Part shown: positions 3,001 to 6,000 of the stretch, piece by piece | How positions within the stretch are numbered: the first letter of the stretch is position 1 | How the letters are laid out: every line of letters starts with the position of its first letter | DNA from: Saccostrea cucullata | Taxonomy: Eukaryota | Reading direction: 5' to 3' | Length of the DNA stretch: 64,000 bases | Assembly: GCF_032062105.1 (NCBI RefSeq) | Contig: NW_026938747.1 | Span: 186,001 to 250,000 of the forward strand | Made by a program: the position numbers and the translations under genes | The notes under the pieces: generated by a model | Database searches by the model: none | Told to the model about the DNA's origin: nothing | What the model saw: the letters and a program-made list of their open reading frames with translations, nothing else

Positions 3001-6000
3001 CTTTATATAATGTAATGTCTGTATCTGTATGACTGTATATGCATGTTGTGATCCTGTTTGGCTTCCATTTCATTTCAGAGAAAAAGATTCATTCTTGTCT
3101 TTTTTTATTTTTGCAGAACACTGGTACTGAATTGCTGTTTTCTATTATGAAAATTAGTGATAAGGCCATAATAAATAAATTGCTGGATTCTCATCCGAAT
3201 TTTTTTTTAAATCGAGGCGGGCGGGCGGCTTTTATTTTATATTTTTATTTTTTTCAATTTTGCAGATTTTTTTTTGACCTGGTCAATCGGTGTAATTTTA
3301 TCTACAATACCCGAATAAAAGTCATAGTAAAGGTTCAATTATCTCTTACTTCACATCATCACCAATCTTTTTCAACCAATGATCCTTGTTTAAAATATAT
3401 ACGCATGTATTGCAGCAATAACCGTCATTTCAGCTGTCAAAATCATGTCGACTTTCGCGGGATTTAAAACAAAAGTAGAATGGTAGATGAATACCGATCC
3501 CGATCAGAATTAAGACGAAGAAAAACAGAAATAAAAAAAATCGAGGCGGGAGTATAAAATCGGGGCGGGCGGGGATGAGAATCTAGGAATATTTTTATTA
3601 TGGCCTAAAATACCATTTTTGAATTCAGATTTTTTTTAGCTTTAAGTAGACTGAAATTTTTTATGGGCCATCTAATACGGCTTATGAATTGCTTCTGGTA
3701 TAAATTGTATCTTTGATTTGGCTTCCTTCTTTCTGAATTGAATTTTTGATGCTGGAGAGACCAATAAGTCTTTTGCATAGTTTTTTTTCCATTAGCCTCC
3801 ATTCATAACAGTATAGTTCATTAACATTCAATTATAATAAACATTCAATTACTGCATGTATAGTAAACATGATCATGCACTTGTCATAAATTCCTGATGA
3901 ATTGGCTTCCAATTGTGTCCACAAAAAGCAATTATCATAGTTTCAGCCAATAGTTTCATCCCGAGCCTATTGAATTTTATTATATATATATATAATATAA
4001 ATTTTATTATATAAAATATAGATTATGGCATGAAGCCCAATGACACTATGTTTTTGATAATGTAGGAAGATAAGAATTAATTGATGTAGACTTTCATTAG
4101 AAATTGTCTTATTTCTCATTGTCAGTGTATATAGAATTTTTGTCCCAGTGGTATTATATATATAACTACTGTAACATGTCTTGTTAAGCATGTGCACTGT
4201 CAGACTAATTTGCATGTTGTCATGACAACCATGATTATTCATTGTAGGGTAATCCAATAGTATTAGGCAATACCGATGACAAAGAGACGCAACAACAAGC
4301 CAATAAGTTTATTGGTGTTCCGTCTACTATAGACTGCCTACAAGGCATCCTAACCATTATACCCATGCAGTTACTGTCCATGCATATCGCTCAGTTGAGA
4401 GGATGTGATGTAAGCCTGGTTAACACAGTGACCCACTGTAGAGATATCATAACCAGATTGCTGTTCTCTGCATGCTTAGAGTCTGTGTACTGTCTTGTAT
4501 ATACTCATTCTTCCTCTGTAGACCCTTTCTGTTTAACAAAATCTGTCTCATCATGCAAACTTTATTTTGAAAAAGCCACCCCCCCCCCAAAAAAAAACAA
4601 AAATCGTTCAAAAAAAGTTAACAAAATATTTGATTATCCGTATTTAGCAGTTTTTTCTGCAGTATGAAGTTTTGTTGAGATGAGACAGATTTTGTTTGTG
4701 TGTAGTGCTTGTCTAGTGTCAGCTGGCTACAAGGGGCAGTGCATGTGTAGTGAGTCCATATTTAACACCGTCTCAACCACTGGTATCCTTTTAGGGGCGC
4801 CCCGTTTTACTTTGTACCAAGGGAGACACAGAAACACAAAAGTATGCATATAATTATGTGGAGGTCCCCCAGACTGTAGATTGCCTTCAGGGGGTGCTCA
4901 CCGTTATCCCCATGCAGCTGCTCTCGTTCCATATAGCCGTACTGAGAGGATATGACGTAAGAGAAGTTACTGCATGTGTTCTGTTTTTTATCACCTTTCA
5001 GAATCTTAGGAAATTATGGCCAAAAATTTTCTGGGTATTTTTATAAGAAAGCTTTTTATTACTGAGCTTTTTTTCTATTATATTCTCTGATTTTCTGAGC
5101 TTATAAAGAAGATATTTGAGTATTTATAAAAGGATGAAGGAATTTGTGAAGTTGTTTTTAATATTATTTGCATTTTTCATTAGAAGCTATTTAATTTGTT
5201 TCTTACCATCTCTCCTTCTTCTCACAACATTTTTCTCTTTCCCTTCCACACATGCACATTTCACCAAATGTTTCTTTTTTATTATGGGTTAAGCTTAGAA
5301 ATGGTTTTACGTTACTTTATTCAGCTTACTTTTCTAATACATTACAAAGGTAACTTAAGTAATGATAGGCCCCTTGGTACCTATAGGGAGCTAGGTATAC
5401 ATGTATCATTAATCAGAGCTAGTACATACTGGGTTTAGCAGCTGTATGCCTACCCTGGTGCTTTATTGGTGATAGTGGGTGATGGAATTTAAAATTGGAT
5501 GAGGAATAATCCGAATTCTTCTTTAAAGGCAACTCAAAGCACTCATAAATTTTGTATTCCCTCAATAGCCAATATAATACAAAAGCACTGTGATATGAAC
5601 GAACATTAAGAAAATGGTTAACATGCAAGATTACATCTATTTGACAATTTAAGTATAGTCATAAATATATATATTTGAATTGTTGTTAATCTAATTAGGT
5701 GCTAGGCCATTATAAAATCCCATAAATCACATGTATTTTAAGAATTACATGTATGTTTTACAAGCACACATATCAATAATCAATGAGTGTTTTGTATTGA
5801 TGTGATATTAATTTTAACTTTATGATTTTATATTGTTCTCACACTCTTTCACTTACATGTACTATAGTGGGTTATTTATAAAGTAAACATGTTTGGACAA
5901 GACAAATATAATTCACACATTCATGTTCTTACTTAGGCATTTTGGATAACTAAATGTGCAGAGTGAATAAATCAAATTCGGTTTCCATAGGTTAATTTAT

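Follow-up and report, generated by a model that had tools for sequence, protein, structure and literature searches.

The 3' end of the GFAT gene of the oyster Saccostrea cucullata raises the question of how, and to what effect, a single gene uses two versions of the same exon. Within the 64,000-nt stretch of genomic DNA analyzed here (the window), exon A (4248-4409) and exon B (4795-4956), each 162 nt long, lie in tandem on the + strand, downstream of a constitutive 39-nt, phase 0 exon (2643-2681, + strand) that is present in all related loci. The encoded protein is recognized as GFAT by its glutaminase and two SIS domains (Pfam), as well as by a Foldseek match with an E value of 6e-94 to 6r4e (human GFAT-1 fold). 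Our reading, to which we give a probability of roughly 0.7, is that two old tandem duplications allow one GFAT gene to produce enzymes with alternative ends.

Layout and use of exons A and B

Exons A and B are adjacent, homologous, equal in length, phase 0 at both ends, free of stops, and each provided with its own AG/GT splice sites, as is expected of tandem duplicated mutually exclusive exons. They share 32/54 amino acids, 100/162 nucleotides, and 19/54 third codon positions; with synonymous sites saturated to this degree, the two copies must be old, and an assembly repeat is excluded. A sequence-only reading of the locus had proposed this pair, with an upstream exon ending at 2681 and a tail exon starting at 6647, and the coordinates, phase, open frames, amino acid identity, and both outer boundaries are all borne out. 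A and B are the sole matches in the 1.17-Gb genome, and an exon upstream of the pair (2308-2436) is also single-copy, so that this looks like the only GFAT gene of S. cucullata. No vestigial third copy of the 162-nt exon is found within the window, and the nearest named homologues of exon A are those of Magallana, Crassostrea, and Ostrea (93-94%). Upstream of the window, the gene shows a variable N-terminus (P0199, P0276-P0285), with one form lacking the Met-Cys start, and the same proteins also differ in a loop at residues 231-254.

There is strong, though indirect, evidence that transcripts from this one gene include A or B, one at a time. Public oyster protein records (n=55) contain A only in 35 cases, B only in 18, both in one, and neither in one; the single record with both, UniRef K1QYG7, is a gene model without an RNA source, and none of the 55 is an RNA-derived A+B protein. 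Among the 15 public proteins listed for the S. cucullata GFAT gene itself, four are A-only and four are B-only. In addition, A-type and B-type exons are each found in full-length ORFs on Logan contigs of 2-3.6 kb, and complete ORFs on contigs of this length must represent spliced RNA. When words were sampled from 4248-4956, a fraction of 0.30-0.35 was present in 20 runs from 8 studies, only 4 of these runs being recorded as RNA, and no run reached half; the expected fraction is 0.19 with one exon and 0.39 with two (p=0.0004 at 0.35), assuming even word sampling. Each exon is spliced alone, as seen in this gene's proteins and in other oysters' RNA assemblies, which agrees both with the definition of mutually exclusive exons and with the earlier proposal of two GFAT isoforms from one gene. 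The same proposal held that nonsense-mediated decay (NMD) could not enforce the exclusion, and indeed every A/B combination keeps the frame, which rules out NMD as the mechanism.

Four gene models (P0297, P0158, P0156, and P0160) do contain A joined to B, as would be expected if exon A were a dead copy or were routinely included together with B. However, none of the four stems from an RNA assembly, RNA assemblies show A alone, and exon A evolves with a dN/dS of about 0.09. These A-only assemblies and the purifying selection largely refute the idea, whose chance we put at close to nil, and gene models fusing A to B are in all likelihood mistaken.

Age of the pair and its place in the enzyme

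The A-then-B order, with identical exon boundaries, recurs in Pinctada and in loci L001, L002, L023, L054, L070, and L087, and gene models of the annelid Ridgeia and the gastropod Elysia contain both exons. The brachiopod Lingula has three forms (isoforms P0172, P0240, and P0274), and L087 carries three tandem 162-nt copies (216-377, 809-970, and 1688-1849), the third of which groups with one Lingula form (90/91). A-type isoforms are also on record for a chiton, Octopus, Physella, Mercenaria, and Pecten. Phylogenetically, all 24 A-type exons fall into a single clade (99/92), separate from the B exons and from arthropod and vertebrate-like sequences, and within it the A exons of L001, L002, L023, and L054 group with Ridgeia. 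On a tree of 54 columns, an origin by duplication in oysters only is rejected (p-AU 0.026), and a mollusc-only A+B clade is borderline and not formally rejected (p-AU 0.058). Taken together, these comparisons trace the pair to an ancestor shared by molluscs, annelids, and brachiopods, which were already distinct phyla by the early Cambrian; this great age had escaped the sequence-only reading.

All arthropod and vertebrate-like GFAT sequences seen are of the B type and end in the F1 tail described below. Since exon B (Arg2, Phe45, Val49, and Gly52) matches these outgroups, it is the ancestral copy and exon A (Asn2, Met45, and Gln49 type) the derived, lophotrochozoan one. Both copies are conserved under purifying selection, as is typical of tandem duplicated mutually exclusive exons; for exon A, dN/dS is about 0.1 (dN 0.093 and dS 0.98 against Pinctada). 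Helobdella and many annelid-type contigs have kept only A, with its partner B absent, and as the sole version in some annelids the A-type exon is a working general-purpose exon rather than just an adaptation to shell formation. We also observe that the GFATs of Elysia, Aplysia, Biomphalaria, Bulinus, and Physella (P0160, P0356-P0360) have an A-type exon with a first-loop insertion of 20-35 residues.

In human GFAT1, a protein of 681 residues, the counterpart of the 162-nt exon spans residues 614-667 (numbered 620-673 in the tagged crystal construct), which confirms the expected location, where the second SIS domain ends. The catalytic residues are Lys558, Glu561, His577, and Lys676 (PMC7000685), the last being the lysine that had been placed in the tail. 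B and A differ in a fixed manner at exon position 2 (Arg in B, but Asn, Asp, Gln, or Glu in the A type), position 45 (Phe or Tyr in B versus Met or Leu in A), and position 49 (Val in B versus Glu, Gln, or Thr in A), and positions 52-53 show mostly fixed differences. None of these five positions coincides with a named catalytic residue. In the structure model, the last helix (model residues 668-689) covers exon positions 29-50, so that positions 45 and 49 would lie one turn apart and positions 52-53 would lead into the C-loop. The differences between A and B would therefore fall on a single face of the last helix and in the turn before the C-loop, where they probably tune closure of this loop over the sugar site and its coupling to the glutaminase domain.

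Alternatively, A and B could be equivalent in function, with their differences reflecting drift under purifying selection and the pair being kept because each form is the only one spliced in some tissue. The exon holds no known catalytic residue, and Helobdella, like many annelid-type contigs, makes do with A alone, both of which fit such equivalence. Against this, the residues at positions 45 and 49 in 24 A sequences do not overlap at all with those in 12 B sequences, across three phyla, and the replacement of Val49 by Glu, Gln, or Thr is nonconservative. We consider equivalence unlikely and favor the tuning of C-loop closure.

A second pair of exons at the C terminus

The tail that follows is itself encoded in duplicate. 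Tail exon F1 (6647-6704, + strand) encodes the canonical C-loop, with a stop at 6689-6691 and a probable donor GT at 6705, 13 nt past the stop. Tail exon F2 (7344-7385, + strand) is a diverged duplicate of F1, preceded by an AG acceptor and encoding VDHPRGLLKTYTF and a stop. The earlier map of the 3' end had placed F1 correctly and missed this second version of the last exon. The public protein P0279, from the S. cucullata GFAT gene, ends with exon A and the tail encoded at 7344-7385. A donor-like GT lies 12-52 nt past the F1 stop in six genomic loci, and in the intronless contigs L061 and L062 F1 is joined to F2; on this basis F1 appears to be a stop-carrying cassette, with F2 coding only when F1 is skipped and otherwise forming 3' UTR.

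Compared with F1, F2 keeps the equivalents of Lys676 and Thr679 and changes Asn673 to Gly, Ala675 to Leu, and Val678 to Tyr, and it lacks the final Glu. Thus, F1 isoforms have the canonical C-loop ending SVTVE that characterizes GFAT, whereas the F2 isoform does not. F2-type tails, always with two Leu at 674-675, are found in oysters, a clam, a scallop, a chiton, Octopus, Physella, Lingula, and annelids. The F2 tail follows an A-type exon in 14/14 records (one being Lingula's third form) and is seen in 0/20 lophotrochozoan B records, a coupling that we treat as a lead only, given that the records are nonindependent and the queries favored A. Sequence, public proteins, and RNA assemblies together show transcripts that give three proteins, namely A-F1, B-F1, and A-F2.

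One JGI contig set, which by its project numbers we take to come probably from gutless oligochaete hosts, contains two GFAT genes in the same samples, A+F1 and A+F2. Contigs with A+F2 only (L011, L015, L040, and L052) stand against contigs with A+F1 only (L036, L063, L066, and L069), and the A+F2 gene has intact upstream catalytic motifs. In this annelid group the splice forms appear to have been resolved into separate paralogues, a change from a splicing to a two-gene solution. In addition, a third duplicated exon pair is present in L002 (5436-5564 and 6685-6813) and L023 (5561-5689 and 6342-6470); this 129-nt exon has the ring-opening His motif, as HGTLAL and then HGPLAL, and occurs in one copy in S. 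cucullata.

Several lines of background bear on what F2 does. Work by Floquet in 2007 reportedly found that enlarging Ala602 or Val605 of the E. coli enzyme lowers ammonia transfer. The C-loop covers the sugar pocket, and terminal tags impair GFAT activity (PMC7000685). In human GFAT2, the channel-lining Ala makes contact with the Trp of the channel (PMC7948480), and in the Candida enzyme, removal of the four C-terminal residues disrupts communication between domains (PMC3224219). From the pocket cover, the channel Ala, the role of the last residues, and the E. coli variants we infer that F2, which alters the C-loop itself, would probably lower coupled activity and yield a throttled enzyme. 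Structure-model confidence for the F2 tail is low, which is uninformative since the C-loop is flexible anyway. A bolder reading, to which we give less than even odds, is that A-F2 is a natural lophotrochozoan C-loop variant whose ammonia channel is narrowed or uncoupled (Ala675 replaced by Leu and terminal Glu gone), acting as a throttled form, as a dampening subunit of mixed dimers, or with a changed use of nitrogen.

Control of exon choice and relation to known systems

Motifs for Rbfox proteins adjoin both exons. The branch-point-like ACTAAT of exon A is directly followed by TGCATG (4204-4216, + strand), and another TGCATG (4971-4976, + strand) lies 15 nt downstream of exon B. TGCATG within 100 nt downstream of B is found in 6/8 two-exon loci versus 1/34 constitutive exons, although 4 of the 8 loci are related and, counted by lineage, the downstream motif is present in 3/5. 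GCATG upstream of A occurs in 5/8 two-exon loci versus 0/34 constitutive exons, and both placements are rare in loci that have lost B (4/39 and 3/39). Pinctada lacks TGCATG downstream of B, and the oyster carries TGCATG on the other side of each exon as well, downstream of A at 4469 and upstream of B at 4740. Upstream Rbfox sites usually repress an exon and downstream sites activate it. By this rule, Rbfox adjoining the branch point of A would repress A and Rbfox just downstream of B would activate B, so that the ancestral B form would be produced in Rbfox-rich cells, such as muscle and nerve, and the A form elsewhere. We give about an even chance to an Rbfox-based choice of this kind, perhaps aided by an oyster intronic duplex that may loop out A.

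The duplex in question links a candidate docking arm (2948-2979, + strand) to a candidate selector arm that precedes exon B (4697-4751, + strand), which includes the TGCATG at 4740. It leads to a competing explanation, in which the choice is made mainly by competing RNA structures, with docking site and selectors, rather than by Rbfox. As in Dscam1 and 14-3-3 zeta, where docking sites pair with selectors, extended pairing within the introns could exclude one exon by looping it out. The pairing is predicted at -44.9 kcal/mol, versus -35.8 +/- 2.9 in 8 shuffles; the A-B intron holds a perfect 18-bp stem (4535-4696, + strand; arms 4535-4552 and 4679-4696), where the longest was 13 in 500 shuffles and 16 in 141 other window stretches, and folds with z = -2.9; and pairing is also possible between 4730-4749 and 4187-4205, the latter beside the branch point of A. 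However, six other loci hold nothing clearly equivalent to the duplex, the oyster introns cannot be aligned to those of Pinctada, and no convincing second selector is seen for A. Docking-site systems such as Dscam1 and 14-3-3 zeta have competing selectors, conserved with compensatory changes, whereas here we find one strong duplex, a single convincing arm pair, which lacks conservation outside the oyster in the loci tested. Without counterparts in those six loci, the duplex and the 18-bp stem are at most a lineage-specific aid, and structure as the main determinant is doubtful. Far less probable still is steric exclusion, in which a branch point near the donor of A would block A-B joining in the manner of OGDH 4a/4b (PMC7969005). 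A TTAAC 11 nt into the A-B intron and hairpins that shorten this intron suit such a mechanism, but the intron measures 385-1356 nt with 18-91 AGs across eight loci, the AG-free zone before B is just 16-72 nt in 8/8 loci, and the centroid fold leaves 123 unpaired nt and three stems. As steric exclusion by a distant branch point calls for a long AG-free zone with a donor-near branch point, we reject it here. Rbfox-based choice remains our preferred account.

Two further elements were seen in the window. The intron before exon A holds a 444-bp element (3163-3606) with 34-nt terminal inverted repeats (88%), probably a small nonautonomous transposon, and a 34-bp hairpin lies at 6171-6244.

Exons of this class are well known, and public annotation already includes the isoforms. 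Human tandem duplicated mutually exclusive exons such as those of PKM, FGFR (IIIb/IIIc), and OGDH (4a/4b) are catalogued in PMC9741552, the main text of which does not mention GFPT1 or GFPT2. Like that class, A and B are homologous neighbors of equal length and phase, used singly, old, and conserved, and swapped C-terminal exons are common there as here. Unlike it, the A/B pair is seen only in lophotrochozoans and is accompanied by a swapped catalytic C-loop. In mammals, GFAT is also alternatively spliced: exon 9 of GFPT1 (GFPT1-L) is a 54-nt cassette insertion, reported as mammal specific, that lowers activity in muscle and makes use of an intronic UGCAUG bound by Rbfox1/2 (PMC10514471). The sequence-only reading rightly held the oyster pair to be distinct from this muscle exon, since A and B substitute 54 residues of the isomerase domain rather than insert a segment, and any Rbfox control common to both would be convergent. 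Vertebrates (GFPT1/GFPT2) and Drosophila (Gfat1/Gfat2) obtain two forms from two genes, in contrast to the one gene used here. Our literature search, mostly of sources outside subscription journals, returned no paper on either exon pair.

On the way to UDP-GlcNAc, GFAT carries out the rate-limiting step, is under feedback control, and governs the supply of amino sugars for chitin and glycosylation. Its C-loop is usually regarded as fixed, a swapped catalytic tail would come as a surprise to specialists, and natural variants across three phyla offer test proteins for the control of ammonia channeling by the last helix and the C-loop. Gene-level measurements of GFAT expression in molluscs lump together at least three enzymes. 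If A-F2 is indeed a natural C-loop variant of the kind outlined above, hexosamine flux would be set by splicing according to cell type, and A-F2 would have become a gene of its own in one annelid group.
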